A DNA stretch of 63,789 bases, filler included, from Octopus bimaculoides (Eukaryota): assembly GCF_001194135.2 (NCBI RefSeq). It is 7 parts of 7 records of this genome, joined end to end, with 100 filler letters (N's around TTAATTAATTAA, not from the genome) between each part and the next. Parts side by side here need not be neighbours in the genome. Positions count along the whole stretch, not along the records: positions 1 to 15,084 come from NC_068985.1; 6 more parts are not named here. The stretch is one strand, 5' to 3'. The notes below the pieces were generated by a model, which was not told where the DNA came from, ran no database searches, and saw nothing but the letters and a program-made list of their open reading frames with translations. Numbering within the stretch: the first letter of the stretch is position 1; the number at the start of each line of letters is the position of its first letter. The translations under genes were made by a program, and so were the position numbers. Positions 207 through 24,545 of the stretch are shown one piece after another.

Positions 207-534
207 TCTTAGCATCGCTTCGCTGAAGAATATTAAGAAGGCTGTTGCGCACGTCATCGGCACGCTCGTTCGTGGCTGATAAGGGCGATGTGGGATCGAC
301 ATATCCAACCGCAGTGTTGTCAGTGGTATGGTTGTTCAAGGTCTGATGATGCAGCTGCATTTTTATTTCGCCTCTAACGTTTGTCTTCAAAAGAGGGACC
401 GCGAGAGATGTCAAAGGGGGAAACAACATCGCTATCAGAGAGGACTACTCACGGCAATCAATGTCAGAAATGCCAAAGGACTGCTTCATGCAGTCCTTGC
501 AACGCTTCCTTGGTGCCCAGCTTTTTAGGAATTG

Positions 535-1860
535 AAATTTAGTGCATGAGTGAGTTTGATGCCGCTGCCCTCATCTAACCATCCTGCCACAAAGTTGGTT
601 CATCTGGGACACTTGATAGTAATAGGTCCAACTTTATTTTGAAGATACCTACATCCACCTCATGCAGGTCTCTCAGTTCCTTCGGGAGGATATTGAAGAG
701 CTGTGGACCTCTGAAGCCCAGGCTATTGCAGTATCTTGTCCTACATCTTGATGGCAAATTTGGAGTCCTTGATGGTTTTCTAATCTCTTGTTCTAAACCT
801 TTTAAGAATACATCCGGTCGGCCACCTGTATTTCATTGCCAATTTAGCAACATGCACATGAAAGAATGCATTATTACTCATGTAAATGCCCTGGTCTCGC
901 ACTGACTGTGCCTCTGAGATTGCAATCCCTCCAGGTCCAGTTTATTTAATGGGTATTGCATTTAGTTTTGCATGCTGATAGCATAAGGGTTGAAACTTTT
1001 CAGCATTAAACTGCATGCTATTCTTTTCTGCATATTTGTATAATTCATTCAGCACACATTGCAGGTGCATAGTGTCTTCAGGGTTCTGTATTACCTGTGA
1101 AACTTTTATATCATCTGCATAACTTGTGATCGTGGCTCTCTGTGTGGCTTAGGGCATGTCTGAGAGGGCCATTATGAACAGTAGTGGTCCCAAAACAGTG
1201 CCTTGCGGAACACCGCTTATTATTTGTGTGTCATTGGAGGTAGCCCCATTGGCTACTACCACATGACTTCTATCTTTCAGAAAGTCATAAAGCCATTGTC
1301 CCAAACTTTCCAACTATGCCGAGATCACGCAGTCTGTGACATATCATTCCATGATCGACTATTTCAAAGGCCTTTCAAAGTCGAGATATATCACTTCCAC
1401 ATTTGATTGGTTGAGCAGTTGTTTCTGCACTCAGTCATAGTGTTGTAAGAGCTGAGTCAGGCAGCTTCTTCCTGGTCGGAAACCATGTTGGGTGTCAGGC
1501 AGCAAGTAATTTTCTTTAAGGAAGGCGATTAGCTTTCTTCTGACTATTCGTTCCATGACCTTGCTGATGTGCGAGGTCAGAGAGATAGGTCTGTAGTCCT
1601 TGGCCTCCGCTCTGCTACCTCCTTTATGAATAGGGCATATTTTACCCTCCTTCAGTTTACTTGGAAGTTTGCCAGTTGCAAGGATGCTCTGAAAGAGGGG
1701 ACTCTATTGGTCTTGCTTGGACTCGCTTAAATACTTTTAGAAGGATTGCTGGGGAATCCATCTTGACCAGTAGCTGAGTTTGGATTCATTTCATCTTCAT
1801 AAGGGACACCTTCATAACTTTATTCCATTAAAATTGAAAATGGCATTGGTGAAACTGAAA
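535..1860 (-). mobile_element. Degenerate CR1-group non-LTR retrotransposon, reverse-transcriptase region (ORF2 pseudogene)
   Basis: Manual minus-strand translation gives the RT motifs in order: SATGQDGFP; KICPIHKGGSRAEAKDYRPISLTSHISKVMERIV (about 1550-1665); QHGFRPGRSCLTQLL (about 1445-1490); IYLDF..AF..VDHG; SGVPQGTVLGPLLF (1176-1217); YADD (1110-1121); C-terminal SLGFRGPQLFNILP...FKIKLD (ORF 575-757). There is an in-frame TAA at 1149-1151 and several frameshifts. The element may extend to about 2250. Confidence 0.93.
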
Positions 1861-4142
1861 TTTTGGTGAAACAGTCGTTCCACGTACTGTGCATAAGTTT
1901 AGAATCTGGAATCATGTTAGTCTAATAGAAACATCTTAGCCATACAGCCATATTTGTGTCCATGCAAATTTGACTTAACGCCATGATCTAACTTTCCCTT
2001 ACGTTGTTCTGTCTATATACGAACATATTTCTTGTCTTAACAAGAGAGTAGTAATTTCGTATTTTATGTAGGATTTCTGTGGTTTATGAATTGTTTCCTT
2101 ATGTTTTAAAAAGATTTCTGATGGTTTCAATTCGCTTGAGGTGTTAGAGGTTTGTTACTCTGTAATTAGTCTATAATTCTTTCCTGTATGCGCAACCTAT
2201 TGTTGGTTTCAGTGAAAATAGAAAACACTCTTTGTTCGTGTCTTCTCCTTTCGTAGCTATAGGTAATAGATTCCTATTATTGATTATCTTCGAAAGTTAT
2301 TGTGCTCACGAAGATATTCCACTTACTCGCCGGAGTTTTATGGCTAAAACTTATAACTTTTATTACATTAGCGTTTACAATGGTGGCGAGCTGAAAGAAT
2401 CGTTAGACAGTCGCCGAAATAAAAATACTTTGTGGTATTTCTCCAGGCTGTTTATATTCTGAGTTCAAATACCGGCAAGTTCTTAACTTTTCACGCCTCT
2501 GGTGTGGTTTAGACAAAATACTAGTGTAGTGAAGAGTTCGGTCTAATCAACTACCACCTTCTCCACAGAATCACTGGTCTTACGCCTTAAGCCCATACAT
2601 TTGTTCACTACAAGCAAATCATTTCTGCAGGTTGTTTAACAAGGCATTGCAGACCCGTCTTTTTCAAACAATGAGAGACTGTTATCATATGCTTCTGGAA
2701 GATGTTTATTTTCTGTAAGTCCAATTACCTGTGGAATTGTTTTGTTTTTTTATCAATGAATAAGATTCATACATTTGCTGGTTATTAGTTCTTCATTATG
2801 TGTGAATAATAATTGCATGATCTACAATAAGCCAATATTTGTCTGGTGACTTTTTTTTATTTGTTATCATCTCAACGAATCTTTGTGTATACCAGAAATA
2901 ACAGAATTTAATCCAATTAACTATATACTGTTCTACTAATGTGTATTCATGTATTCAATCAAGACGTAGAGTTAAAAATGTGATATAAGAAATAAAGCAG
3001 TATATAAACTAATGCATCATTTCAATTTTCACAAGAGCCGTATTCACTTCTCCTCAAAGATTAATTTTAATACATAGAATGTCAGACTCACATATAGAGT
3101 TTCTAAATCTTGATAGGAACAAGTGATTTTTAGGTTGTGGTTCAAAACTTCTGTTGTAACGTAGTTACACGTCGCCAATTAATGTAGTATCGCCACTATT
3201 TATGTCGATACTTATTTACACTATACGGAAATTCTCTGTCAATGTTGACGAACCGCGATGGATATTTAATTGACCCTAATAATTAAATTCTAACACAAGA
3301 ATTTAACTCATGCAGCTCAGAATTCTGTATCTAAATCGGCTTATCACAATACTACACGATTGAGCTTATGAAATAAGGATGCAATTCGCAAGAAAAAAAA
3401 ATAATCTCAGTTTATTTAGTCTCACTAAAAAAAATAAATAAAAATAACAAATGCTGCATTTGGTGAGATTTGAACCCAGTGCTTTGACACTAGTACTAAA
3501 TACTATTAGAAATGGCCATTTAGATTCTAAAGAGTTCCCCAATTCATCGCTTTCTTCTAAGCATTTTATCTTAACTTGTTATAGCTTTTATATATTTTAT
3601 CTAATATATTTTTGTATATTTTTCTTATTCAGATTTTGTTATACTTTAACTGTGATATTTTTCATTTTCTGTTGTGCTACTTTTTTTATGTTATACACTA
3701 AAGTATTTGCATTTCGTTTGGTTTAAACGATGATGGTTTCTTTAAATATCATTACATCCGTATGAGTTAGATTTGACTCGAACATATTAAGAATACTTTT
3801 TTAGATTAAATTTTTTTCTTGTCAGTGGAGTGCAATAATATTTAATTTAATTCTTTTCAAGAATTTTGGTTCTATGTAACTTTTTATTAAATATCTTTTT
3901 AATTTCACTTTTTCGATAAATTCAATCGATTCCATTTCTTCAGTGTCTTCTGGTCAGACTTTTGAGAATTATCGCATGTTTTTTCTCCATACTATCAGAA
4001 ATAACAAGACCGCATGGCAGGAGCTATATGTATGTATGTATGTACGTATGTATGTATGTATGTATGTATAAAAAGATATATATACACATATATGCTTATA
4101 CATACAAATATTCATAGATATGTGTGTATATAGACACACACA

Positions 4143-4189
<47 letters not shown>

Positions 4190-6042
4190 CATATATATAC
4201 ATTATACATATTCATATATATCTATATCTATATCTATATACATATATNNNNNNNNNNNNNNNNNNNNNNNNNNNNNNNNNNNNNNNNNNNNNNNNNNNNN
4301 NNNNNNNNNNNNNNNNNNNNNNNNNNNNNNNNNNNNNNNNNNNNNNNNNNNNNNNNNNNNNNNNNNNNNNNNNNNNNNNNNNNNNNNNNNNNNNNNNNNN
4401 NNNNNNNNNNNNNNNNNNNNNNNATATATGTATATATATGCACGTGTATATATAAATGTGTGTGTGTGTATATATGTGAGCATGTATATTGGAATTTTGT
4501 TTGTTTCTTTTATTTTAATAATTCCAAAGAAAACTCCAGACGATTTTTTTTTTGTGCAATTTTAATACGCTTCGTACTTGAATGTTTAAAGTTCAGACAG
4601 TCTGCAGAAATATTGAGCTGAACTACAAAGTCTGGCAGCTGCGGTGTTGTCTAGGTAAAATGAATTGCATGCGCCATCTCACTTGTCACGGTTCACGATT
4701 AACCGAGCAAAAAATTAACATATAGCTCCTGTATCACAGACCAGTGGATTAGCAATAAGTTCGTTAACAGAGAACATTATACATAACCATGAACATTATG
4801 GTCATCATCATCATCTACATCTCGCTCAACGTGATCATCATAGTCACTATTATTACCTCAGCAGAATAAAACACGTGTTAATCTGAGGCAGTTTCGTCGT
4901 GATACACTGTGTTGAAAATTGTATCTGCCTGAGACATCACGCAGCGAGGTCAAATTCGGTAACTCGTTTTTGCAAAGTAACCTTCTAAATCATTCAATCA
5001 CACTTTGCCTCCATTTATAATGATGGATGTAAATGTTTATGTGTGTATGTATGTATATATATTTGTGTTTGTGTATTTGTGTAAATATAGTTAAAGATTT
5101 ATATATTTTTCTATGCAAAAAAGAACATCGAACATAAAGTAAAGGACTTCATACATAGTTAATTTTTGATCTTGTAACGTTAGCCATTTTTTCTTTTAAG
5201 TTCCCTTCCGCTGGTGTATAGTTTATACGTTTCGCTACTACCATTTCTTCTATTTTACTTCCTTTCTGATATTTGTGGTTGACTTTGAATGCATAAAGAC
5301 TTCGCCTGCTGGTTATAAAGTTACGTTTGAAATATCGTCTTTTAAGAGAAGTCTGTTGAAATTTAAATTATATTTTCAAAAGATTTCTACTATAACTTTT
5401 TTGAAGTTACATATATATATATATATATATGCGTATATGCGTGTTGTTATTTATGGCATAAGGATTTAGAAACTTCGAGAGATATGAAATAATTGCTTGT
5501 TAAATGGTGGAACTCAAGGTTGATTATGCGAGAAATAATATCACGTAGATATTGAGGTAATAAATTCCTTGGTTAGAAGCACTCGTAGGTTACCTATGGG
5601 TCGGAAACCAATATTATCTGTAAACATAACTGATCTGTCATAAGTCAAAGGGTGCACATAGAAGTTGGGTAGGCTTTGACAACTGGCTGTCTTGTTTACA
5701 GAGAATATGGGTAGTCATGAAATGAATCTGAAAAATATCCATATTTAATTACCCAAAGGTTTTAGACAAAAAAGCGTAAAAGGAGAAAGGATGGTTAATC
5801 CTTGACACCTGTCACAGTTCGCCACAAACTAAAATTCACATTTGCAGCGAAATTTATGTCTGTGATAGATTGCACAGATATGGTGAAAAGTTTTACAACA
5901 TAAGACGAATATGAAAAGTAACTATAAAATATATTTTGTTTTTAAATATAAGCTGATATAGATCTCCAACGAGCATGATGATACAACCCCGCCACACACA
6001 CAAAGATATGTGCATGTATATATTTGTGTGCGGGTTTATATA

Positions 6043-6660
6043 CAGGGTGCGATGGGTAAATGGTCGCCAGTTTATATTTTTAATTTCACGCACACACATT
6101 GTTTGTTTTTGATTTTGTCGACTACACACACAGTATAGTAGCGTCAGTTGGGCACCGTCTGTGAGAAAAACAGCACTATGGCGCCATTCACTCTGCCAGG
6201 AATTTGGAAACGACATACCTGTACTGCTTGGCATTTGCACCTGAAGCTCCAATATAGAACATTTTAGTGTGTGTGGGTGTCAACCAGAGGACCGTGAGTG
6301 ACAAAAATAAAATACCCAGTCAACATCATGGTGTTTGGAGTGATGACTTGAGATAGAGCTGCTCTGGGCCAAGCGGTTGGATGCTGGAAGACCCTATGTC
6401 TGGCAACAGAACTCTTTTCCAACCACATTACCCCTAACATCTGGCCACCTAACTCCCCAGGCTGCAATCCCCTTGATTATGTGTGGGGCGCAGTTGAGCG
6501 AGAGACCGACAAAACTCCTTTTAACACCAAAGATGAACTGAAAGCAAAGATTATGACAACATTCACGAACTTAAACAAGGAAGCTGTCCAGAAGAGATGC
6601 AGGAGATTCTGAAGTCGTCTGCAGGCCGTGATTGAAGCGAATGGCGATTTTATTGAGTGT
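6043..6660 (+). mobile_element. Internally deleted Tc1/mariner-superfamily DNA transposon remnant
   Basis: Starts TA|CAGGGTG (TA target plus TIR start). The C-terminal transposase segment IWPPNSPGCNPLDY..VWGAVERET...TKDELKAKI...CRRF*SRLQAVIEANGDFIE begins near 6440. The central catalytic region is largely deleted and no right TIR is seen. Confidence 0.85.
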
Positions 6661-7099
6661 TATATTCGCTTTTCTCGTTGAAAGTATTAACAACTCATTT
6701 GTCATTAAATAGCTGTTGCAAAATATAGACGTTTCAGTTTCAACACATGATCTGAGATCAACAATTTGTTCTATAATTTCAAAAATAACCTTTTTCTGTC
6801 TCGAATTAAAGTTGTTCTATGTATTTTGGTGTTGTACTATCTATCACAGTATCCTGTCAAATGCCTATGTAGTTTCATCTGCTTGTTTGCCAATATGTCT
6901 GTTAGCGATCTAAGCATTAAATATCATTGTTGTTTCAACTCAAATCTGCGTAGATATTTACGAAGGTATCGTACGATGAGACACTGAAAATCTGTATAGC
7001 AAAACTTGAGCTTTTCATTTCTATATTTGTAGTCTGAGATATGTAGTGTGTGCAGAGATTCCAAATTTCTTTAAGATGAAATGCCTTGTGACGTTTCTT

Positions 7100-8690
7100 C
7101 TGGGTCTTTATTTTCAATTCTGTTCAACTTCAGCCAGGGTCGAATTTGCCTCTCATCCTTCGGGGACAAGAAAATAAGTACTAGTCAATTATGGAAGTCG
7201 ATATAATCGACTAGCCTCTCCGCATCCCACCAACTTTTCAAAATGCTGACCTCGTGCCAAAATTAGAAAGAAATGCTATAAAGAACATTTCAAATTCATT
7301 CTAATAATCCTTTCTACTATAAGCACAAGACCTGAAGTTTGGGGGAGGGGGATAGTTGATTAGATCGATCCCAGTACGCAACTGATACTTCATTTATCGA
7401 TCCCGAGAGGATTAAATGCAAAGTCGACCGTGGCTAAATTTGAACTAAGAACGTAGCGATGGACAAAATACTGCTAAGCTTGTCCCCCAGCGAGCTAGCA
7501 ATTCTCCCAGCTCGCTGCCCTCATATTTATTCTAATAATGGCTGACGAAAGGGTGTTTTGTAGAATCGCTAGAATTCTGAGTTCTAATCCTTCTGAGGAT
7601 GACTTTTTTCCTTACTTCCCACGAATTCGCTAAATTAAGAACAAGTGAAGTACAAAAGTCGATATAAACGATTATTCTCTTCAGAAGTTTATGAATTTGA
7701 TCCTATGTGAGAAATCATTATAATAATTGTTTTTGATTTAGTTATTACGTCAGCAGTTTTCAACAGGTAAGGTTAGTTTTACTCTCGACCCCACTCTTTG
7801 ATTAATACTTTATTTTATTGACATCGGAAAGATGAAAGGCAAAGTTGACCTTGACAGACTTTGAACACAGAATGTAAAAGAAGAGAAAAACGGGAAAAAT
7901 TTCGAAAAAATTGTTTATGGTGTTTGTTTCATCCCTTTATGTTCTTGGTTTAAATCACGCCGAGGCCAATTTTGCTTTTCATTATTTTGGAGTCGATAAA
8001 ATAAAATACCCTGAAGTAATGGGGTTGATCGTATCAATTATCTCTTCCTCTCAAAATCGTATGCCTTTTGCCTGCCTTAGAAACGAAAAGAAATCATTGT
8101 AAAAATGACTTGTAAATTAGATATAGGACACTAAATACTTGTACTGGTACTTTATTTTATCGATCCTCCAGGGATAAGTCCTCTATCAGATACGGCAGAA
8201 TTTCGAAACAGAATGAATTAAATACTGAAGAGTATTTTGTTTGACATTCTATCAGTAATCATTTAAGGTAATATTATTTGCGAAATTAGAGAGAACACCT
8301 CACACATTTTCTTGGAAGTGGAGATGGGTACAATTCCACAACAAAATTTGATCACTATTTTTTAAGCCCCAGTAGGATGAAATGCAAAGTTCACATCGGA
8401 GAAGTATTAATACAAGACGTGAATAAACAACGTGAGATATATCAAAAACGAATGATATTATTTCCCATATTGTAGGCGGTGACCTAACAGAAGTGTTAGT
8501 ACACAGGACAAACTGCTTGGTGAGATTTGGTCAGTCTTTACATTCGAAGCTCAAATTCCGTTGAGGTCGATTTTGCCTTTCATCATTCGCAAGTGCCAGT
8601 CAAGTATCGGAGTCTATGTATTCTATTTCTTCCTGCCTTCACACCACCAAAAATGCTGGTCCTGAGCCAAAATTTAAAGCTATTATTTAC
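7100..8690. mobile_element. Cluster of about 7 degenerate copies of tRNA-derived SINE family A in both orientations
   Basis: Recurrent core GAGTTCAAATTCC..GAGGTCGACTTTGCCTTTCATCC...GGGGTCGATAAA..AAGTACCAGT or its reverse complement at about 7120-7270, 7300-7520, 7540-7700, 7750-7880, 7940-8080, 8110-8260, 8290-8420 and 8470-8690. Confidence 0.8.
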
Positions 8691-8898
8691 CATATTGTGA
8701 GAATTTGTGAATGAAACAAAATAACATCACTTGAAGTGAAACAAAAGCAAGCTTCAGTAGGAATAACAATTCCGCTTCTCAGAAGATCTGATAAAAGTAT
8801 ATCATTTATTTGATCGTTCAAATTACACTATAAAGTAAAAACCATAAGAAATTTTGAAATTAAAACAATCACACAATATGCATCAGAATTCAGTACAT

Positions 8899-8904
8899 TT
8901 TATT
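8899..8904 (-). promoter_or_regulatory. Probable polyadenylation signal (AATAAA) of the S-crystallin gene
   Basis: TTTATT on + (AATAAA on -), 50 nt downstream of the TAA stop at 8954-8956. Confidence 0.6.
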
Positions 8905-8953
8905 TCAGGTCGGTAACAATCTTCAATGCATGATATCTTAACCTTATTTCCAT

Positions 8954-9118
8954 TTAGAATTCAGTACGACTGCGTTTCTGTAAGTACGATGACAATTTGG
9001 TGTGATTCATAACACGGGTTCTCAACGCTTGAAGTTTCGGGTAGTTGTTGAGAAGAGCAGAATCATCCCTCAGTGGATTCTCAAGAGCGCAATAGCACAT
9101 CATATCAGCCATTGTGAA
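8954..9118 (-). CDS. S-crystallin (sigma-class GST-derived lens protein), last coding exon
   Basis: Acceptor aaattttcattttAG (AG at 9120-9119), phase 0, 55 codons: [54 protein letters not shown]. It matches the cephalopod S-crystallin C-terminus ([14 protein letters not shown]...YPKL..LR.RVM.H.K...YL..R.RT[DE]F) as I recall it from Enteroctopus dofleini S-crystallins. Confidence 0.97.
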
Positions 9119-9204
9119 CTAAAATGAAAATTTAGTATAGGTTTGTAAAATGAGAGAAGAAAGTATAAATATGCGGATATATACATACATACATACATGC
9201 ATAT

Positions 9205-9258
<54 letters not shown>

Positions 9259-9943
9259 GTATATGCATACACAGAATATGAGGAGTTTAAGTCAAGAAAG
9301 ATAGCCCAGACTAATAGGTATGAGGTCTAAGTGCTCTTACCAGGATTTATTATTTATTTATAAACCTCCCCTTCGTTCAGCTTTACATTTCTAATATAAT
9401 GTATTTATATATCTATCTGCTTTCTCTCATATTAAAGCACGTTATTAATTCTGCCTCTCATTGTTCACTCGGACCTACAAGCTGCTAGCGCTACCTTTTC
9501 CCTTCTCGCAACTGGATACATTAACTAAACTTTATTTTCAACATGAACTTTTCCCAGTGATGTGCAACAGGAAGAGCCCTCTCATATGGATGTGAATAAA
9601 TCTCTCTACCCCCCGGAACACGATAACCTATGAACTGTAACGAACTATCATCTTTCTACCGTACTACGCATTTTTCTACAACAAATTTTCCTGTCAATAT
9701 ATTCCTGCTTCTATTTCGTATATTTCTCCGAAGACGGAATATCCAATATAAGAAACCACAGGTCGATATGGTGATCCAGTACCTGGGATATCCCGGAAAC
9801 AGCTGCAAGAGGCTATATCCATTAATTCTACTTACATTCCATTAGCATTAAATTTCTTAAATTAAACTAAATTAATTTAAATTCTATAATCCTGCCTTGA
9901 TTGTTTTCCTCCTCTTCAACTCATACACACACACAGACACACA

Positions 9944-9989
<46 letters not shown>

Positions 9990-9999
9990 NNNNNNNNNN

Positions 10000-10064
<65 letters not shown>

Positions 10065-10381
10065 GCATACATGCATACAAGTGTAAAGATTTATGAAAAT
10101 ACCTCGTGATGTATTTTGACAGAATAAATTGGATTATTAAACATGTGTGCTAGTGTTAATCAGTTCTAGTGTTAATCAGTTAATTAGAATTTTAAAAAAA
10201 TAGTATCACTTATATGTATAAGGGTAACGAATTAGCAAAATCGTTATATCATTGGGCAAGATGACGTGCGCCATTTGTGTAAGATTTTTAAGTTCTGATT
10301 TCAGATCTTGCTACGATGAATTCTGTCTTAAGCATACCGAATCCATAAAATACAACTAAAAGTTATGATAACAACATGCAC

Positions 10382-10449
10382 ATAGGCTCTTTGAGCTGGA
10401 TCGGCTCTTTGGGCTGGATCGGCTCTTTGAGCTGGATAGGCTCTTTGAG
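10382..10449. repeat. 18-bp tandem repeat, about 3.7 copies (GGCTCTTTGAGCTGGATC), in the last S-crystallin intron
   Basis: Units at 10385-10402, 10403-10420, 10421-10438 and a partial unit at 10439-10449; one substitution each in units 2 and 3. Confidence 0.95.
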
Positions 10450-10879
10450 AGGTAAATATATGGGCACTCATTAAAGCAGACGATACAACTGCTATTTATA
10501 TGGTGTGAATGTATTGATCTTGGCCACCGGTATCTAACTGGGTGTTGATACAATGGAAATTTTATCCTATGACAAAATGATCTTAGATACGATTGCCAGA
10601 TTATATGGTACCTGGGCCATTGATAAACTGAGTAATGTAGAAAGATAGATGTATCTATATCTTAAAAAAAAGACCTTATCTACAATTTGCGTGTTTCTTG
10701 AAATTACATGTTGTTGTTTTAGTGCATTTACAAAAATAGCTTTACATATATTTCATTTCCAATTTAAACTATAGTCAATGTTATTTGCCGTTATCAGAAA
10801 GTGTGAAGTTCTTCCATAAATATAAAGCCCTTTTTCATCAACACAAAGATTGAAAATACGAAGAAATATTTCGTCAAAC

Positions 10880-10987
10880 CTGGTCTCCCATGAAATATTG
10901 GTTGCCATTGTTATACATTTCAAGGGTTTTCTCCATGAATGGCAGAATTCTGCGCAAAGTTTCTTCATATCTCATACGTCTTTCTGA
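10880..10987 (-). CDS. S-crystallin penultimate coding exon
   Basis: Acceptor tatttctttgatctgcAG (10989-10988), donor CAG|GTTTGA (10879-10878), 108 nt, phase 0-0: [36 protein letters not shown], matching the S-crystallin segment [26 protein letters not shown]..[FY]FMGDQ. It joins in frame to exon 9118-8954. Confidence 0.97.
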
Positions 10988-12313
10988 CTGCAGATCAAAG
11001 AAATATATCAAATATGAAAATTAATATCTTTTATAACAATATAGATTAACAAATTTGTAAATGTCTTTTTCTTGTTATTATTGGTGTAATTATTATTGAA
11101 GATGGCAAATTGGCACGAACATTAAGGAATCAGAAAATGTGATTTACAAAATCCGCTGCGGTTTGAAGTTCTGAGTGCAAAATTTAGCCTCCCTCTCATT
11201 GTTTTGGAGGGATTCGATAAAGTAAACTACCAATCTAATACAGACGACAATAATATCGATAATTTTCCCCACATTTCTAACACTGTGCGTAAATCAAAAC
11301 CATTTGTATACAGCGAACTATATTCAGTGCTTATGTAATTTTTCACTAGATACATATTCAACGATTTTTTATTCAGACTTATTATTTTCCACCATTACGA
11401 AATGTTTCGTTACTTAAAACGTCTAAATGATATATCACGGGTTATGTCAAGCTGATTATTTCATAGTAGATTTAAATTGTACCATATATGATTAGAAAAT
11501 TTACATGAGTAATAAAATATCTTAACTATGTACATTTTACGTATCTTTTCTTTCAATTTCAAATTTATACTTGTAGCGCTGCAAAAAATTATGAAGAAAT
11601 TATCTCCCTTGCATAAATTGTTCTCTAGTGTATAAAAGAAACAAATCCTAGCGAAAGTTGTATGATGACACTTTCTGAGAATGAAGACAAATTAAAGAAA
11701 AAAAAAAACGTTCGTTGCTTAGGTACAAGACCAGCAATTTCTTTTTTTTTTATATATATAACTGGATTAGTGTGTACTTGAGTAGTGCATTGTTTTTATC
11801 GACCGTGGTAGGATGAGAGGCAAAGCTGGCTGCATCAGAAATTGAAATACGAATATAAAGTTTTGAAACAGAAACTCCACTATTCCATACCAATGCACCG
11901 AAAGAATTTTAAGAAATTATTTAAAACATTTTAATGATATTTGTAAAAGATGGATTTTTGCAATAATAGTGTGTAAATGAATTGTGAAATTCAATTTCAA
12001 ATTCTGAAAGTTCGGTAATAAACACCCCTAAGGGTTTTATTTTCACTCTCAAATTTGAAAGAAAGTGAGTACCCAATGGGTAAACTGCTGTAGATAAATT
12101 ATTGTATAAATGAAAATTCGTATATTCTCCTAGGTAGTTAAACACGCTGATATATTTACACATTGTGAATTACTTGGAATTTACTAGGAAATTATATTTT
12201 TATATTAACATAGCAGAACATAAATATGAGAAAATACTAATAAACATCAGCAATCTAATTTAACAATAAGGATATACTGAAAATATTTTAAGTGGAAAAT
12301 ATGTAATACTTAC

Positions 12314-12343
12314 TGAGATGTTAGAATCACTTGAACGCTGGAA
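12314..12343 (-). CDS. S-crystallin 30-nt microexon (central loop)
   Basis: ttttttacgtatattatAG|TTCCAGCGTTCAAGTGATTCTAACATCTCA|GTAAGT; phase 0-0; encodes FQRSSDSNIS, matching the FQRSRDMSSS segment that precedes SEKRMR in octopus S-crystallins (recalled). Confidence 0.9.
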
Positions 12344-12423
12344 CTATAATATACGTAAAAAATTGTTATTTGGTTTAAAAGCGATAAATGGAAAAATAAT
12401 CATATTAAAATGTATATATATAG

Positions 12424-12457
<34 letters not shown>

Positions 12458-13415
12458 NNNNNNNNNNNNNNNNNNNNNNNNNNNNNNNNNNNNNNNNNNN
12501 NNNNNNNNNNNNNNNNNNNNNNNNNNNNNNNNNNNNNNNNNNNNNNNNNNNNNNNNNNNNNNNNNNNNNNNNNNNNNNNNNNNNNNNNNNNNNNNNNNNN
12601 NNNNNNNNNNNNNNNNNNNNNNNNNNNNNNNNNNNNNNNNNNNNNNNNNNNNNNNNNNNNNNNNNNNNNNNNNNNNNNNNNNNNNNNNNNNNNNNNNNNN
12701 NNNNNNNNNNNNNNNNNNNNNNNNNNNNNNNNNNNNNNNNNNNNNNNNNNNNNNNNNNNNNNNNNNNNNNNNNNNNNNNNNNNNNNNNNNNNNNNNNNNN
12801 NNNNNNNNNNNNNNNNNNNNNNNNNNNNNNNNNNNNNNNNNNNNNNNNNNNNNNNNNNNNNNNNNNNNNNNNNNNNNNNNNNNNNNNNNNNNNNNNNNNN
12901 NNNNNNNNNNNNNNNNNNNNNNNNNNNNNNNNNNNNNNNNNNNNNNNNNNNNNNNNNNNNNNNNNNNNNNNNNNNNNNNNNNNNNNNNNNNNNNNNNNNN
13001 NNNNNNNNNNNNNNNNNNNNNNNNNNNNNNNNNNNNNNNNNNNNNNNNNNNNNNNNNNNNNNNNNNNNNNNNNNNNNNNNNNNNNNNNNNNNNNNNNNNN
13101 NNNNNNNNNNNNNNNNNNNNNNNNNNNNNNNNNNNNNNNNNNNNNNNNNNNNNNNNNNNNNNNNNNNNNNNNNNNNNNNNNNNNNNNNNNNNNNNNNNNN
13201 NNCACACACATTTATATATAAGTATATACATAATTGTATGTGTGATATATAAATATATATATATATATATTCATAAATATTCAATTATGATTCATATAAA
13301 GTGCGTATATTTAAATATGATTATAATTGATGTAAATTATATATGCGAATGTATGTGTTGGGGTGGGTTTGTGCGTATGTGTTCACGTACATGCCCACTT
13401 ACAAATTTATATACA

Positions 13416-13450
<35 letters not shown>

Positions 13451-13710
13451 TATATATACAAACATACACATAATGTATGTTTGTATCAAGTTGCACGACT
13501 GAATGTCAATTTGGTAATTATTTAGCGTCTCTAAAGATTATTTCAGATGTTCAAAAAGTGCACTTTTAAAAGGAAACAGCAGTTTACAGCAATCTCATAT
13601 TCCACTACTGAAGTAATGAATGTTCCAGCTCCTGACAAAATTAAATAGAATCTATGTTTGCATTAATATATTTGTAACGCAAAAGATATGGCTTCTATCG
13701 AAAGACTTAC

Positions 13711-13741
13711 TTCTTGGATCATACAGCTACTGTCACAAAAC
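13711..13741 (-). CDS. Probable S-crystallin 31-nt microexon (central loop)
   Basis: atatttatttctccaaaAG|GTTTTGTGACAGTAGCTGTATGATCCAAGAA|GTAAGT; phase 2-0; encodes (x)FCDSSCMIQE. It ends in the phase needed to join FQRSS and aligns loosely with (M)YQDGNCRMM of octopus S-crystallins. Homology is weaker than for the 30-nt exon. Confidence 0.65.
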
Positions 13742-14204
13742 CTTTTGGAGAAATAAATATATATATGAGAAATCTGATTGGCTTCTGTTTGGTCCTCGCC
13801 AACAGCTACGATTTTATATACCAACAATCACACATTGAGTTACTTCAAAGACAATACTTTTCAAGCACAATCAATAACCACACGGTGATTATTATTATAC
13901 TGGCACCGGTTTTAATAAGGAAATATTACTGGTGGTAATTTCACAACCGTCCATTTTATCCTTGCGATGAAGGTGCTGACTGAAACATCATATATAGAGT
14001 ACCAAGTACTTCATACAGGTGGAATGAATAAGATTTTGGCTACGATCTGGCTACATTATCAGTTACTGGCAGCTGGTAAATTTAAAAGAACTTGAGAAGC
14101 TCAAGCAATGAAATACAACTTGCCTTCTTCTGAGAAATGAGTGAGTTGTATTATGAAATCTTAAATCCCCTTTTCTAACTAGTTAAGAGACAAACGTACA
14201 TACA

Positions 14205-14283
<79 letters not shown>

Positions 14284-14523
14284 TGTGTGTGTGTGCGTTT
14301 GTATGTGTGTGCGTGGGTGAGTGTATGTGTATGTACATATACATTTATATATATAACTATCCCTGAGGAAGACCATCCCATGTTCGCAGCGGCATTCTCA
14401 TACTCGATCAAGTACCAGATAGTGATGGATGTTTATACATATACTTATATGTATATATGTCTCTATGTATGTATGTTTGTATGTCAGTATGTATGTATAG
14501 GCATACGCACATACACACGCATA

Positions 14524-15050
14524 CAGGTGGTTGATAAAATAATGGAAAAACCTTAAAATTTCAGACAAATTAATTTTAATATGGGATAGGACCACCTTTG
14601 GCAGTAATCGCAGCCTGAATTCTACGAGGTATGGACTCGTACAAAGTTTGAATTGTTTCCAAAGGAATTTTTATCCCTTCTTCAGCTAAAACAGTTTCTA
14701 ACTCTTGTAGTGGTGATGGTGGAGGATATCGACTCCTTACTTGTTTTTCTAACACACCATAAATGTTCAATAATATTGAGATTTGAGTACTGTGTTGGCC
14801 AGATAAGATGACCAACTTCACTAGAATGTTTGTCGTGCCATTCAGTAACGATTATAGCTGTGTGAATTGGTGCGTTATCATCCTGAAAGATTTCGTTTCC
14901 CTCCGGAAACAGTTCCGCAAATATAGGATGAATTTGATCAGATAAATTGCTTAAATAATCTTGACTATTAATTCTGCCATGAAGGGAAAGCATTGGGCCG
15001 GCGGATTTCCAAGATATAGCCCCCCCCCCCCAGATCATCACAGATCCTCC
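14524..15050 (-). mobile_element. Tc1-like DNA transposon, 3' half, degenerate, truncated at a scaffold join
   Basis: ORFs 14682-15041 and 14576-14821 give MIWG.ISW.SAGPM...GRINSQDY...IFQDDNAPIHTA...WPTQYSNLNIIEHLW...LEKQVR...IQTLYESIPRRIQAAITAKGGPIPY*, which is Tc1 DDE-domain-like with a frameshift. The TIR starts TA|CAGGTGGTTGATAAAATAATGG at 14522-14545. Confidence 0.92.
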
Positions 15051-15084
15051 TGCAATTTTAGCAAAACATATTAAGAAACACTAA

Positions 15085-15184
15085 NNNNNNNNNNNNNNNN
15101 NNNNNNNNNNNNNNNNNNNNNNNNNNNNTTAATTAATTAANNNNNNNNNNNNNNNNNNNNNNNNNNNNNNNNNNNNNNNNNNNN
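15085..15184. other. Artificial 100-bp scaffold spacer (44 N + TTAATTAATTAA + 44 N)
   Basis: The 12-mer at 15129-15140 has stops in all six frames; an identical construct recurs five more times. Confidence 0.95.
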
Positions 15185-15245
15185 TCCCCAGGCATTAAAC
15201 ACCCTCTTCTCACAAAATGTGAATGAAGTCTAATACAGTGAAGAC

Positions 15246-15550
15246 GCGTGGCTCTATGGTTAGGGTCTTTGCCTCACGATCGTAAGGTCGTAAGTTCAAT
15301 TCCCGGCGGCACTTGAGCAAGACACTTTACTTCACGTTGTTCCAATCCACTCAGCTGGCAAGAATGAGTAGTACCTGTAATTCAAAGGGGCCAGCCATAT
15401 TACATCCTGTGTTACGTTGAATCTCCCTGAGAACTACATCAAGGGTACACGTGTCTGTGGAGTGCTCAGCCACTTGCACGTTAATGTCACGAGCAGATTT
15501 TTCCGTTGAGAGGATCAGCTGGAACTCGTGTCGTCGTAACCGACGGAGCA
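15246..15550 (+). mobile_element. SINE family C copy (tRNA-like head, GGGTACACGTGTCTGTGGAGTGCTCAGCC core)
   Basis: Head GCGTGGCTCTATGGTTAGG...GTAAGTTCAATTCCCGGC; body shared with 20326-20681, 37620-37890 and 39889-40184. Confidence 0.8.
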
Positions 15551-16114
15551 CCAAGTTAGTTATTTCCAATACAAGCGCAAAGTCAATGGAATCAGATACG
15601 GTTACAGTCGATTATATCGACCCAATTACATGACTGGAATTTATTTTAGCGACCCTCGGAAAAAAAAATATATATATAATCCGAAGTTGATTTCGGTAGG
15701 ATTTGAACACTAACCCTAAAAAAACATAAGCAAACGTCATAAAATATTTTTGCAGGGGCTCTACTGATTTTGTTACCGATTGCCCTCAAGAGCTAATATT
15801 AATTAACTCGGAAGCAGGAAGCGAATAGCTCGTCAACATTACATTCGAATAACATTCGCATTTGTACGAGTGACAGGGAGGGCAGTTTATGTAAACATGT
15901 AGCAGTCCTCGAGAATGTGCATGTAATTCTGCCTGCATGGGATTTTTTTCATGCATGCCTTCATAGACGTACGTATATATATACTTACCAATGTGCGCAT
16001 GTATGTCGGCAAATATGTACGGGTGACTGTGTGTATACACGTAGTAACTACACATAGTGCACACACACATGAATATATATATATACACACACACACACAT
16101 ATGTGTATAGGTGT

Positions 16115-16148
<34 letters not shown>

Positions 16149-16166
16149 AATGTATATGTAAGTTTA

Positions 16167-16199
<33 letters not shown>

Positions 16200-16214
16200 G
16201 CATATGTAAGTTTA

Positions 16215-16245
<31 letters not shown>

Positions 16246-17171
16246 NNNNNNNNNNNNNNNNNNNNNNNNNNNNNNNNNNNNNNNNNNNNNNNNNNNNNNN
16301 NNNNNNNNNNNNNNNNNNNNNNNNNNNNNNNNNNNNNNNNNNNNNNNNNNNNNNNNNNNNNNNNNNNNNNNNNNNNNNNNNNNNNNNNNNNNNNNNNNNN
16401 NNNNNNNNNNNNNNNNNNNNNNNNNNNNNNNNNNNNNNNNNNNNNNNNNNNNNNNNNNNNNNNNTTTATATGTATATGTAAGTTTTTATATATATATATG
16501 CATGTGTGTGTGTATGAATGTATGTATGTACATAGGTGTATATATATATATATATATATATATGTATTCATACACAAGCACACGCACACACACACACACA
16601 TGTGTAAATGTATGTATGTATGTATGTACGTATATAGGTATGCGTGTATGCATGTATGTATATTATATATATGACGTGTCTTCTTTCCAAAGTTCATTTG
16701 GCAGAACAACAGGATCAGTTCTTAAAGGGGACAACAAAATTCTTTTGTCGTCGGAATTTTGACAAGTTGAGTGAAACGTCGGATTTCTGCGAAGTCTTAC
16801 ATATTTTCACTCCACTGCTAATGGACTGAATTAGAGAAGGAAGAAATTCTAAAACAATTTACATAACCCATTCTTATTCACGATGTTGTTGCCGCTGCTG
16901 TTTCTGTAGTTGTTGTTGCTTTTTGCTGAGAACTTCAACTACGTTAGTTTTTTTTCTTTAACGTTTGGCTGTGTAATTTAACTCAAAGATTTATTTATAA
17001 ATTTCAAACTTGTAACCTGGGCTGCGAACATTCGAAGTTAAGCTATGCCCCAGAGGATTCGAAATATTAGTTTCCAATACAACTAATGGTATCTATAAAA
17101 TAATACATATCGCCAATGAGGACATAACTTAAATCCCATCAGACATTTCGTTCGTTACTTTTACGATTCTT

Positions 17172-17253
17172 GCCCTCAATACACCAATAGCCCTCAGTAC
17201 ACCCATCGCCCTCAACACACCAATTGCCCTCAATACACCCATCGCCCTCAATA
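17172..17253. repeat. 18-bp tandem repeat, about 4.5 copies, with 36-bp higher-order alternation (GCCCTCAATACACCAATA / GCCCTCAGTACACCCATC)
   Basis: Units start at 17172, 17190, 17208, 17226 and 17244. Confidence 0.95.
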
Positions 17254-17559
17254 GAACTGATATCTATAACAAACAGTACTTAAACGGTTCCAAACCAAAC
17301 TTAATATCTATGATAACTTCAAGGCAGCAAGCTGGCTGAACTATTAGCGCACCAGACAACATGGTTTTAGCAGTATATCTTACGATAGCAACTTATTACG
17401 TTCCGTGCTCAAATCCCACTGGAGTCGACTTTGCTTTTCATTCTTTGGGGGTCAATAAAATAAAATACCAGTCAAGTACTAGGGTTGATGAAATTTCCGG
17501 CCTAGTGCCAATATTAGAAACAACAATGTATGTATGTTCTTCTGTTTCTCTTTTTAATT

Positions 17560-17887
17560 CGATTCAAATTTTGTAAGCCTAGTACTTATTCTATCGGTCT
17601 CTTTTGCCGAACCACTAAGTTACGGGGAATAAAACACACCACCATCGGTTGTCAAGCGATGTTGGGGGACAAATACAGACACACAAACATATATACACAC
17701 ATACATATATATATGTATATAAATATATACGACGGGATTCTTTCAGTTTCCGTCTACCAAATCCTCTCACAAGGCTTTGGTCGGCCCGAGGCTATAGTGG
17801 AAGACACTTACCCAAGGTGCCACGCAGTGGGAATGAACCCGGAACTTGTGGTTGGTAAGCAAGCTACTTACCACACAGCCACTCCTA
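17560..17887 (-). mobile_element. SINE family B copy (GTGGCTGTGTGGTAAGTAGCTTGCT...GGCACCTTGGGCAAGTGTCTTC... with internal TA/CA microsatellite)
   Basis: Near-identical blocks recur at about 25845-26280(+), 27860-28480(+), 29215-29705(+), 29788-30305(-), 34375-34683(-), 36362-36535(-), 49580-49903(-), 57050-57220(+) and 60305-60445(+). Confidence 0.88.
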
Positions 17888-20019
17888 AAGGAAAATAACT
17901 CCCTGTACAGAACACCAAATTAGTGCTCTAATTAATAGAGCAACAAAGCGAACAAATTTCAGGATTCAGAGTTCATTTTGTCAATATATTTCCCAACATC
18001 GGAATACTTCATAAAAATATACGTAAATAAAAATATGCAGATACGAAATATAAAGCATAAATATACTCGCATGGCATCGTATAGAATTGTATGTCCGTGT
18101 TTGGAATCAATGAGAAAGTTATTATACATGCACGGTCAAAATTGCATTAATCGAAATTGTCAAATGGACGAAAGGGTGGTTCAAAATGATTTTAAGAGGA
18201 ATCCATAGGTAAATCCAGTCAAAGTTCAGATTCTTACGGCCGTTTCAAGAACATGTGGTATGAAATGGGCGAACCATTTCCATTCATCTCAGTTATCCAC
18301 ATTTCTTTCTTGAGAGACGACTTAAGAGAATTTAAAAGATTTAAAAAAAGAATTTTTAAATATGTTCAAAAATATTTTAAATTTAAAGAATTTGAAGCTT
18401 GATACGAAAGTACTTGCTGTTCAGGCGTATGAAATAAAATAGATGCTGGATTTTAGTGTTTAAATAGACAGCAGAACGTTTAGCGGTAATGCTAATAGAC
18501 GAGGCCAAAATATAATAAGGGTTGACGGTTAAAATTATATACAGTCTGACCATTTAACGAGAGAAAAATTCGAAAGTTGAGAAATATATAAATGTATGTA
18601 TGTACACACACATATGTATATATGGGGTTAAAGAGAGAGAGAGGGGGGGGGATCCTTGTCACGCATAGTGTCACGGCACTAATTTCGTCTGGAGAGATCA
18701 CTTTAAGTCCCTAAGTCTCTGTGGGATACACAACCACGTACGATCTAGTTCAATGAATAGGCAGTTCGGTAGATCGTCGAAACCGACCGAGGATTCGTTT
18801 ACTTACTTACCTACCTTCCCTGCCGTTCGTCAGTGACCACACTCCAAGCACTGATGATGATGATGAGGATGATGATGATGATGATGCGGAGGAAGATGAC
18901 AATGATGATGATGATGATGCTGGTGGTGCCTGGTGGCGATGGCGGTGATGGTGGGAATTGTAATGACGATACTGCCAGTATTATCTGTAAGCAATTTCGG
19001 TTAAAATATTACTTTCGAAAACAAACAAATAAATAAATAAATAAATAACGAAGCCTTAATTTAAGAACAGAAAAAAATATGAAAAAAAAAAAATAAATAA
19101 AATAAACTGTGTTCATTCCTTCTCGTATCAAAACAAATTTGAATTAATTACTGTAGTGTCTCTACCATCATGTAAACGATCCGTTATTTTGGTCTCGAAA
19201 CGCAAATTTCAATTTGTATTACTTGTGCCAACCAATGTAAAAGAAACACACAAATAAAAGAAAAACAAACACGTTATTATTAGTAGTAGTAGTAGTATTG
19301 CTGCTGTTGTTGTTGTTCTTACTTCTCATTACAATAACATGGTTATTTGATTTGTAATGAAACCCAATGCAGAAGAAGATAACTATTTTTTCGGTTTCCC
19401 CAAAACTAAACCAACGCTAAAACATCACGCTTTTCCCCCCGTTGCCCTCTTCTCCACCTTGACGTGTCCGTGTCCGCTCTCTGATTAGATAACATGCTAT
19501 CTGTCTGTGTGTACCTCTCTACCCCCCCCTCTCTCTCTCTTTGCCTGCCTGTCAAACCTTTAATCCTGAAATGTTTGTAACTTAAAATACCAGAAAATAC
19601 GATATTTTTGCCCCGCCATAACATCTATATCCTGACGTCTATCTTGAAAAGATTGTTTTTCTTTTCATCTTCATACTCTTGCACCGTCGCTGTCATCATC
19701 ATCGTCATCGTCATCATCATCATCATCATCATCGTCATCAGCAGCATCGCCGTCACCATTGACAATATCGTTAGATCGTCGGGGAAAAATGGCTTGCGTT
19801 AATTCTTTTGGCTCTTTACGTCTGAGCAGCATTATAGGCCCCTAGGCAAATCAATGCGCTGGACCCTATAGCATTATTTAGCGATAACCGGCCACAGCAT
19901 ACATAGTTTAGAATTGAGCCCCTAAACCAGTGAAGTCCTTGGGTAACTGTCCAACGTGCCTATGACTTAAGATGGCGTAGGTTCTGAGCTCAAATTCCTT
20001 CGAAGCCAAACTGGCAGGA

Positions 20020-21600
20020 CAGGTGATGATCTGGTTGAAAAGATGGCTTGCTGATAGACTCGTCAGAGCATCTGACAAAATGCATTACGGTATTTTCTTT
20101 CGGCTTTTTATGTTCTGAGTTCATATCCCATCGAGGTTAACTTCGCCTTTCATCCTTTCGAAGTCGATCAATGCTGGCGTTCTTCCTAAATTAGAAACCA
20201 CTGGCAAATTAGCAGAATCGTTAGAACATTCGGACAAAACTTTTAGCGGTATTTCTTCCGGCTTTTTACAAAAACCGTCAAAGTCGACTTTCCCTATCCT
20301 TTTTACATTTTTTTTNNNNNNNNNNACTCGCGGTCATAGGATCACAATTTCGATTCCCAGATCGGGCGTTGTGAGTGTTTATTGAGCGAAAACACCTAAA
20401 GCTCCACGAGGCTCCGGTAGAGGATGGTGGCGAACCCTGCTGTACTCTTTCACCACAACTTTCTCTCACTCTTTCTTCCTGTTTCTGTTGTGCCTGTAAT
20501 TCAAAGGGTCAGCCGTGTCACACTCTGTGTCATGCTGAATATCCCCGAGAACTACGTTAAGGGTACACGTGTCTGTGGAGTGCTCAGCCACTTCCACGTT
20601 AATTTCACGAGCAGGCTGTTCTGTTGATCGGATCAACTGGAACCCTCGACGTCGTAAGCGACGGAGTGCCAACAGCAACAGGGTGGGGGGAGTCAATAAA
20701 ACATGAACCAAATGGAGCACTAGAAACGATGTAATCCACTGCCCCACCCCACCCACTCTCCTAAAAATTCAGGTGTCCTTCGCGCCGGACAAAATGTTTA
20801 GCGTCATTTCTTTTGGTTTTACATTCTGAGTTTAAATCCTGCCGAGGTCGACTTAGCCTTTCATTCCTTCAGGGCTGATGTAACAACTGCAAATCAAGTA
20901 CAGGGGGCAATGTAATCAACTGGCATCCTCCGGCAAAATTCCAGACCTTATGCCTGATCAGCTGGTAGAATCGTGAGCACGTGAGACAAAATTCTTGGCA
21001 GCATTTCTAATCTCTCTCAATGTTCTCAGTCCAAATACTGCCGAAGTCAACTTTGTCTTTCATCCTTTCGGAGGTCGATAAAGTAAAGTATCAGTAAAGT
21101 AGTGAAATCGATGGTATCGACTACCCTCCTCCCCCTCCCCCACTTCAAAAAGAAAACTACTGGTCTTGTGCCAAAATTTGGTCGGGCGAAATACTTGACG
21201 ACATTGTATCTGTCTTTCTGTTCTAAGTTCAAATTCCACCGAGGTCGACTTTGGCTTTCGTCCTTTCGGGGGTCGATGAAATACATACCAGTCACGTACT
21301 GGGGTCGATATAATCGACTATACCCCCTCCCCCAAATTTCAGCCCTTGTGCTTATAGTAGAAAGGATCATCATCACCATCATCATCATCATTATCATCAT
21401 TATCATCATCATCATTATCATCGTCATCATAACAGTAGAGCGTCGACTAAAAGCTCTGTGATATTTGCTCTGAATCTTAATGTCCTGGGTTCAAATCTCG
21501 CGAAGTTGAACTCTACCTTTCATCCCTCTGAGGTCGATAAAATAAATTACCGGTCAAGAGCTGAGATCGATTTAATCGTGTAGCTGCAAATTTTTTAGCT
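20020..21600. mobile_element. Dense SINE cluster: one family C copy (20326-20681) among about six family A copies
   Basis: Family A core repeated at about 20020-20180, 20200-20310, 20780-20950, 20960-21180, 21181-21368 (followed by a (CAT)n tail to about 21430) and 21440-21600. Confidence 0.85.
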
Positions 21601-22131
21601 TTCTAAGACGTTATTAGATAACTTAGGAATGCATGGATGTTACGCAACTATTGCCTTACAAAGAAACACCACGTCTTGACCACCAAAAATGCAATCCTAA
21701 AAATAAAGTCACGATCTATTCTCGATCAGTCAGTGCATCACGTTCTTGTGACTCGAGAATTTGAAACAAATCCCTCTTGATGGATGCAGAATGGCGGTTG
21801 ATGATCACATGACCACTTCAGAACGCTTCGATCGCAATATACATGATTACTCAATGAAGACGATTACCCAATCAATGCACAGTCGTGTACAGTCGACCGA
21901 TTGAACGAAATCGTGGGTCGGAAAAATAATTCCTTTTTAATTCATACATATTCGCGCGCGCGCACTCACACAACATACACACACACGCACACATATATAT
22001 ACAAAATACTTCTACATATATACGTATATACGAGGATGTGTGTGCGTGTATGTATATACGAGGATATTTATATATACATATATATGTGTGTGTGCGTATA
22101 TGTGTGTATATATATATATAATTTGTGTATA

Positions 22132-22300
22132 CAAATTTAATTTGCGGTCCATGGGAAGAGCCGTTTTAACGATGCGTCCTACCCAGCTCTTCGAAACGCC
22201 GGTGTTAAAACGGGGGTAGCTGATGAAGGTAAATGTTCTCTATGTGGCTTGTGCGTTTTCTTGTCTACGTTTTGTTTGCAATGTCCTGTACCCAGATATG
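22132..22300 (+). mobile_element. Probable Penelope-like element terminal-repeat fragment
   Basis: CAAATTTAATTTGCGGTCC...CGAAACGCCGGTGT...CTGATGAAGG...TTCTCTATGTGGC; the CGAAAC and CTGATGA words are typical of PLE pseudo-LTRs. The family assignment is by recall only. Confidence 0.45.
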
Positions 22301-22649
22301 CACCTATACATACAGGTGGATGTCGGTATGCACATACCTGTACGTATATATGCATATACTCATTTACTATTTGTTTAAATATATATATNNNNNNNNNNNN
22401 NNNNNNNNNNNNNNNNNNNNNNNNNNNNNNNNNNNNNNNNNNNNNNNNNNNNNNNNNNNNNNNNNNNNNNNNNNNNNNNNNNNNNNNNNNNNATACAACA
22501 TGTGTATTAACACATGCATAAATGTTGATTAGCTGACATTATTGTTCACTAAATTATCCGGTAACTGATAGTTACCGGAAGTTCACAAAAAGAGAAAGAC
22601 GAATGCCAGGAACCTCAAGCCGATAAGATTGTGCTGCAGCTGGTTACGG

Positions 22650-22870
22650 CGATGATGATGATGGTGGTGGTGGTGGTGGCGGCGGCGGCGGAGATAATGA
22701 TGATGTCGTTGCTAGTGATGATGACGATGATGGCGCTTATGGTGATGATGATAGTGATGGTAATTGTGAGAATGATGATGATGAGGAGGGGCAGGAGCAG
22801 GAGGAGCAGGATAAAGATGGCGACGATAATGACTATGATGATGATGATCATGATCATCATCATCATCATG
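22650..22870. repeat. Compound trinucleotide microsatellite (GAT/GGT/GGC/CAT)
   Basis: Visible; it produces the spurious poly-M/poly-I ORFs 22615-22956 and 22631-22930. Confidence 0.9.
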
Positions 22871-23125
22871 ATAAACACAGGAATACAACGCCTGCACTTC
22901 ACCCTCGCCCCTCTTTTGATATCTTTGTGAATGTGAATCGAGATAAAGTGATTCAACTCACCTATCCACCACTTAACTGCACTTCCCGCCCAAACCTCCC
23001 GCCCTCCTGCTAGTCCTGTTTACACACATACACACACATATATGTGTATGTATGCATATAAATATATATGTATATTCATACTTATATGCATATGTATGTA
23101 CACATACATATATGCATATGTATGT

Positions 23126-23184
<59 letters not shown>

Positions 23185-24261: not shown

Positions 24262-24545
24262 CCCTCTACCCGGTCGGTCAGATCTGCCAGAAATTGCAGC
24301 CAAACCCACAAATCACTCCCTTATTGTCTTAAGCAGGAAGGATATGTCGGATGACGTAGTTTTAAAAATTCTAAGAATATGGCTCTACGCGGTCGGTCAA
24401 ATCTGCTAGAAATTGCAGCCATAAGAAAATGGCTGGTAAAGAGACCCCTCTATGCGGTCAGTCAAATCTGCTAGAAATTGCAGCCAAGCTTCCCACAAAT
24501 CACACCCTTATTATCTTTAACAAGAAGGATATGTCGAATAATGTA
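24262..24545 (+). repeat. Three partial tandem copies of an interspersed repeat (CTCTA[CT]GCGGTC.GTCA.ATCTGC[CT]AGAAATTGCAGCC...)
   Basis: Copies start at about 24262, 24383 and 24447; related pieces occur at about 27495-27740(-) and 31320-31420(+). Confidence 0.75.

Follow-up and report, generated by a model that had tools for sequence, protein, structure and literature searches.

S-crystallins are lens proteins derived from the sigma-class glutathione S-transferase (GST). In squid, Tomarev and colleagues are said to have found the inserted central peptide of the S-crystallins (SL20-1) in a separate exon, acquired by exon shuffling, and SL11/Lops4 and the squid GST reportedly have no central peptide. 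Here we describe the 3' half of an S-crystallin gene, and the way in which its loop is encoded, on the minus strand of a stretch of Octopus bimaculoides DNA of 63,789 nucleotides (nt), filler included, that is referred to below as the window; the piece carrying the gene, positions 1 to 15,084, comes from NC_068985.1 of assembly GCF_001194135.2. According to Albertin et al (2022), O. bimaculoides has 27 S-crystallin genes, clustered on a single chromosome (PMC9068888). Tan et al (2016) place the extra alpha4-alpha5 loop at residues 112-122, where it strengthens glutathione binding and stability, give the active-site/H-site substitution positions of GST-sigma as 98, 99, 102 and 106, and set out again the model of gene duplication and exon shuffling put forward by Tomarev and colleagues (PMC4976375). 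A full-text literature search, with the primary Tomarev papers outside its reach, found no description of the exon structure of octopus S-crystallins.

The window gene is a further member of this family with a known kind of loop exon. Its closest solved relative is the octopus S-crystallin OctvuS4 (5B7C; E=1.1e-46, 159.7 bits), to which the 100 residues encoded in the window are ~76% identical, both proteins having a decapeptide of the form FQRS..S followed by SE(K/R)RMR and the same long alpha4-alpha5 loop; OctvuS4 is another paralog, probably from another species, and the comparison is of the C-terminal half only. In the native numbering of OctvuS4 the loop exon, exon 4, spans residues 116-125; these are numbered 136-145 in the chain of 5B7C, which has a 20-residue tag. 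The match to the squid GST-sigma 1GSQ is weaker (E=5e-17, 64.8 bits) and the alignment begins only past exon 4. Squid S-crystallins are likewise said to carry an inserted peptide between conserved N- and C-terminal parts and to include short-loop members without it, but their loops reach ~100 residues (P0007-P0009), whereas the octopod exon is of 30, 45 or 54 nt; the squid long-loop proteins P0007, P0008 and P0013 are known here from transcript contigs alone. Closer to hand, the short-loop, GST-like paralog P0010 of O. bimaculoides (locus L004) resembles the window gene in exon 3 (measured at 117 nt), exon 5 (108 nt), the phases and the position of the intron, but it has no loop exon and its protein is 10 residues shorter at exactly that point.

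Three exons of the gene, numbered 4, 5 and 6, can be read in the window (Table 1). Together they encode the C-terminal domain of the GST fold, with matches to the Pfam families GST_C_3 (4.5e-17) and GST_C (2.3e-11) that are both past the curated cut-offs. The closest database proteins, named S-crystallin 3 or S-crystallin 3-like, show 66-70% identity over 94-98% of the query, and, since no protein identical to that of the window gene was found on record in the protein searches, the gene appears to be unannotated. We consider it likely, with a probability of about 0.85, that the window holds exons 4-6 of a major S-crystallin gene, that the loop is encoded by one exon, and that a 31-nt piece further upstream, which an earlier, sequence-only reading had taken as a second loop exon, lies outside the mRNA. 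That reading had proposed a loop assembled from separate microexons of 30 and 31 nt. The letters that it quoted at 13741-13711, 12343-12314 and 10987-10880 are correct when read on the minus strand, its assignment of the gene to the S-crystallins is borne out by the matches described above, and its 30-nt exon is real, separate and of phase 0-0, with RNA junctions on both sides and conservation in O. vulgaris and Argonauta. Exon 6 was absent from its list of exons.

Expression was followed in six RNA runs, as contigs of X1, X2, X3, X4 and X13 and as raw reads of X24. Words of the window gene are present at a depth of at least 25,000, and up to ~260,000, in X1 and X2, and at 5-13 in X3, X4 and X13. 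The junction 12314>10987 between exons 4 and 5, as predicted from the sequence, is found in contigs of X2 (three, at a depth of ~25,000), X3, X4 and X13 and in two raw reads of X24, and the loose ends of X1 contigs are consistent with it. The junction 10880>9118 is also present in RNA, the contigs of X3 and X13 continuing to the last exon; a 778-nt contig of X3 consists of 8930-9120, 10880-10987 and 12314-12344 with 0 differences. Exact contigs lie on exon 5 at a word depth of at least 25,000 in X1 and X2, and exact contigs extend across 8911-8998 in the 3' untranslated region (UTR) at a depth of 14,000-25,000, with loose ends in T runs in X1 and X2 that place poly(A) at 8883, 16 nt past the AATAAA. 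Unspliced contigs of the same two runs also lie across introns 4 and 5, at a depth of 10-20. As the 3' UTR of the window locus is matched exactly by contigs and its introns 4 and 5 are present in unspliced form, the mRNA can be attributed to this locus itself.

A minor variant in X2, at a depth of 31 against ~25,000, has GCA (Ala) in place of TCA (Ser) as the last codon of exon 4; the site is 12314-12316 (junction 10987>12317 with TGC) and the variant may come from another allele or from a paralog that is nearly identical. Contigs of about 860-970 nt at a depth of 78-298 were also drawn to 11687-11760, in the intron, from four runs (X3, X4, X22 and others). They share only 22 and 18 letters with the window near A/T runs and probably represent an unrelated, abundant transcript that has low-complexity sequence in common with it.

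Upstream of exon 4 the RNA departs from the predicted structure. All nine contigs that leave exon 4 in this direction (one each from X1, X3, X4 and X13 and five from X2) share one sequence, with an agreement of 1.0, which in the sense of the mRNA ends ...GATGTTCCAGGAGAAAGATGGCAGAATGATG and passes directly into TTCCAG, or ...MFQEKDGRMM followed by FQRS in the protein. MFQEKDGRMM is the canonical end of an octopus exon 3, the O. vulgaris counterpart being ...MYQDGNCRMM, and these last 10 residues, read from RNA loose ends only, are the known part of exon 3 of this gene. The sequence GATGTTCCAGGAGAAAGATGGCAGAATGATG is absent from the window with up to 3 mismatches allowed, and tblastn with a full-length octopus S-crystallin as query found none of exons 1-3 in the 15-kb piece. 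Of the two peptides predicted for the mRNA, FQRSSDSNIS is thus present, but FCDSSCMIQE is absent and MFQEKDGRMM stands in its place.

The proposed junction 13711>12343 was not seen in any RNA contig of X1-X4 and X13, and not one RNA contig or read from the six runs falls on 13474-14180, although DNA run X15 covers 13580-14180 at a single-copy depth of 11.7. Nor would the 31-nt piece fit the reading frame. Exon 3 as used in the mRNA closes on a complete codon (...AGA ATG ATG, phase 0), after which the 31 nt would be read as GTT TTG TGA, or V-L-stop; entering them in the frame of exon 2 (phase 1) also meets TGA, as can be read directly from the sequence, and the frame chosen in the sequence-only reading needs an upstream exon that ends two bases into a codon, which no member of the family has. 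With no transcript, no counterpart in seven homologous octopod loci and a phase incompatible with exon 3, the 31-nt piece does not form part of the expressed mRNA, and the notion of a loop put together from separate microexons is reduced to a single exon.

The seven octopod loci in which exons were mapped are L001, L003, two genes in L002, L004, L006 and L007 (Table 1). Exon 3 is a single exon of 116/117 nt with a phase-0 end in all seven, and exon 5 is of 108 nt in each of the six in which it was measured. The 30-nt exons of O. vulgaris (two) and Argonauta hians (two) have the same boundaries as that of the window, AG/TTCCAG...TCN/GTAAGT. As the lengths of exons 3 and 5 are fixed, the difference in length between long-loop and short-loop proteins is exactly exon 4, and, as exon 4 varies while its flanks stay at 116/117 and 108 nt, loop length is set through this exon. 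Across these seven loci the length of the octopod loop is therefore set gene by gene through one phase 0-0 exon, of 0, 30, 45 or 54 nt. The idea of a modular loop holds in these loci to the extent of that one phase 0-0 exon; a second microexon was not found in any of them.

Table 1. Features of the window gene and of its surroundings, and loop exons of the octopod loci used for comparison (window features in window positions, other loci in their own)
Feature	Position	Strand	Description
3' UTR	8953-8883	-	AATAAA at 8904-8899, poly(A) at ~8883
Exon 6, coding part	9118-8954	-	FTMADMM...QKRSRTEF and stop; reading frame and X3 contig
Exon 5	10987-10880	-	108 nt, SERRMR...FMGDQ, start of GST C-terminal domain; exact RNA contigs
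Exon 4 (loop exon)	12343-12314	-	30 nt, phase 0-0, FQRSSDSNIS, AG/GTAAGT flanks; RNA on both sides
Assembly gap	12458-13202		N run with (TA)n at both edges, non-coding, upstream of exon 4
31-nt candidate	13741-13711	-	G TTT TGT GAC AGT AGC TGT ATG ATC CAA GAA; AG/GTAAGT flanks
L001, O. vulgaris, loop exon	17999-18028		30 nt, FQRSRDTNGS
L003, O. vulgaris, loop exon	17679-17708		30 nt, FQRSRDFGCS
L002 gene a, Argonauta hians, loop exon	4852-4881		30 nt, FQRSKESNSS
L002 gene b, Argonauta hians, loop exon	12459-12488		30 nt, FQQSKESNSS
L006, O. bimaculoides, P0011, loop exon	8729-8773		45 nt
L007, O. vulgaris, P0005, loop exon	51313-51366		54 nt
L004, O. bimaculoides, P0010 (short-loop, GST-like)			Loop exon absent; exon 3 joined to exon 5 via one 8.2-kb phase-0 intron

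The insertion in the alpha4-alpha5 loop that separates S-crystallin from GST is encoded by one small cassette, exon 4. This exon lies within the phase-0 intron that in the short-loop paralog is the only one between exons 3 and 5, and it may have arisen by insertion or exonisation within this ancestral intron. A separate exon for the central peptide fits the published exon-shuffling account.

Several database models of genes in L001, L003 and L002 drop pieces that are intact in the DNA. In O. vulgaris P0001 is without exon 2 and P0003 without exon 3, while P0002 uses an internal AG within exon 3; in Argonauta P0004 is without exon 4 and the C-terminus. The pieces missing from P0001-P0004 are likely to be annotation errors in tandem arrays.

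Several points weigh against the reading of exons 4-6 given above. The 31-nt candidate has a good-looking pyrimidine-rich acceptor tract and a perfect donor. The RNA evidence consists mostly of Logan contigs, which drop rare variants, and the lens origin of the runs is judged from their extreme depth; minor isoforms that contain the 31-nt piece or are without exon 4 may exist. The scaffold join across the unbridged gap upstream of exon 4 may be wrong, exon 3 itself not having been located, and on the far side of the gap X2 has one contig at a depth of 6 on 13203-13435, below the depth of introns 4 and 5, and none on 13474-14180.

No reading frame crosses the gap, since it is bordered on both sides by (TA)n microsatellite that itself lies in non-coding sequence. 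The contig of DNA run X15 with 100% of the query words ends at 12403, and apparent joints across the gap in DNA contigs of X15 and X16 were set aside as TA-repeat artefacts, with inconsistent coordinates and tens of thousands of repeat contigs. The length of 1.3 kb given to the upstream intron in the sequence-only reading is an estimate only, since it takes in the gap. Exon 3 would lie inside the gap or beyond 15084.

It is in this setting that an error of scaffolding has to be considered, by which 13203-15084 would have been mis-joined within a tandem array of S-crystallin genes and the 31-nt piece would lie outside the intron of this gene altogether. The clustering of the S-crystallin genes (PMC9068888), the (TA)n borders with no DNA contig across them, and the silence of 13474-14180 in runs X1 and X2, where introns 4 and 5 are seen as unspliced RNA, would all agree with such an error. 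On the other hand, the X2 contig on 13203-13435, which is of 516 nt and exact over 13203-13398, reaches 283 nt into the gap, the DNA depth is alike on the two sides (~10-12), and introns of 2-8 kb are nothing unusual among octopus paralogs, so that a distant exon 3 needs no misassembly. A mis-join is rather unlikely. Because the X2 contig extends into the gap, at least part of the missing sequence exists in public data.

Exon 4 has the form of a cassette microexon, being 30 nt in length and so divisible by 3, of phase 0-0, and bounded by canonical splice sites. As the sequence-only reading had pointed out, its skipping would remove exactly 10 residues in frame, and the arithmetic holds; the natural short-loop paralog joins exon 3 to exon 5 at the same point. 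A short-loop isoform made from the same gene by alternative skipping would thus be easy to envisage, and Argonauta P0004, which lacks exactly the residues of exon 4, might be taken for an instance of it. Every contig that crosses 10987 (X1-X4 and X13), however, and likewise the X24 reads, enters exon 4, with a loose-end agreement of 1.0, and in the six runs only inclusion was seen, with no joint between exon 3 and exon 5. P0004 was rejected as a case of natural exon loss or skipping, its gene having the exon intact between AG and GTAAGT (L002 12459-12488), and the neighbouring O. vulgaris models look like gene-model errors of the same kind. Low-level skipping may still occur, because contigs suppress rare variants and the raw-read runs, X23 and X24, are evidently not from lens (3 reads matched), but in the data at hand exon 4 is constitutive and we regard skipping in vivo as very unlikely. 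That it should be regulated, for example between the periphery and the core of the lens or outside the lens, is less probable again; if it were, one gene would give rise to both long-loop and short-loop proteins, and loop length in the graded-index lens would be under the control of splicing as well as of the paralogs. The proposal that loop length is tuned therefore stands for the differences between paralogs, in which the exon is absent or of 30, 45 or 54 nt, whereas for tuning by splicing no evidence was found in the runs examined (X1-X4, X13 and X24).

With exon 4 taken as the single, constitutive loop exon, the nature of the 31-nt piece remains to be considered. Since 31 nt shift the frame after exon 3, the piece, if it were a real but rare or tissue-restricted alternative exon, would act as a poison exon and not as a module of the loop. 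Its place on the strand of the gene, upstream of exon 4, its canonical AG and GTAAGT and the pyrimidine-rich tract ahead of the AG would suit such a role, and a rare form could have been lost from the contigs. Yet none of the six runs has RNA on it, including the two in which the window gene reaches a depth of at least 25,000, the homologous loci have no counterpart of it, and a stop would soon follow after a phase-0 exon 3, while comparable candidates arise by chance: an AG, an open stretch of 20-45 nt and a GTAAGT occur together at three further, unrelated sites in the 15 kb, so that this pattern alone is not beyond chance. A rare exon of this kind is extremely improbable. The confirmed donor of exon 5, at 10880, is GTTTGA, far off consensus, and a perfect GTAAGT belongs to the 31-nt candidate, which is not used; the quality of the donor motif is thus no predictor of usage here.

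The least probable explanation is that 13711-13805 represents a degenerate exon 3 left by duplication of an exon or gene, with the 31-nt piece as its 3' part. It draws on scattered identities in a global MAFFT alignment and on a distance from exon 4 of ~1.4 kb (with the gap at its estimated length) that resembles the length of intron 3 in O. vulgaris. It was rejected because local alignments against four canonical exon-3 sequences did not outscore those of shuffled sequences (a score at least as high as observed was reached by a fraction of 0.44-0.96 of the shuffles at the DNA level and 0.65-0.85 at the protein level). Other segments of the window, several in number, outscore 13711-13805, an interval in which tblastn detected no exon 3. 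The 31-nt piece is therefore treated as a look-alike in non-coding DNA, most likely a chance resemblance to a pair of splice sites in an AT-rich sequence.

The surroundings of the gene contain remnants of mobile elements. Upstream of the S-crystallin exons a fragment of a Tc1/mariner-type transposase lies at 14576-15041 on the minus strand (DDE_3, 2.5e-06; motif DDNAPIH), its frame broken into two open reading frames. Downstream of the gene, at ~575-1556 on the minus strand, a run of open reading frames carries the reverse-transcriptase motifs FRPGRSC... and GVPQGTVLGPLLF, with a weak match to RVT_1 (0.0046), and is probably a decayed non-LTR retrotransposon. An interspersed repeat of ~230 nt is found in the window at 7302-7539, 7810-7891 and 8472-8587 and elsewhere in L001 (13685-13871, 15021-15474 and 26863-27710) and L004 (24580-24808). 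It occurs in several copies, in both orientations and at 70-78% identity, and its hosts, besides the window, are the introns and flanks of S-crystallin/GST loci of O. vulgaris and O. bimaculoides.

For this locus the outcome is the correction of a tempting gene model, in which a 31-nt exon would truncate the protein, and the recognition of a very highly expressed S-crystallin gene that is interrupted by a gap in the assembly; for neighbouring S-crystallin genes, several models in the database (P0001-P0004) each miss an exon or part of one. For the octopod S-crystallins as a family, the rule that loop length is set via one phase 0-0 exon in a fixed intron is a tidy but modest addition. It brings no new mechanism, and the loop exon provides a simple handle with which loop lengths can be catalogued from genomes.

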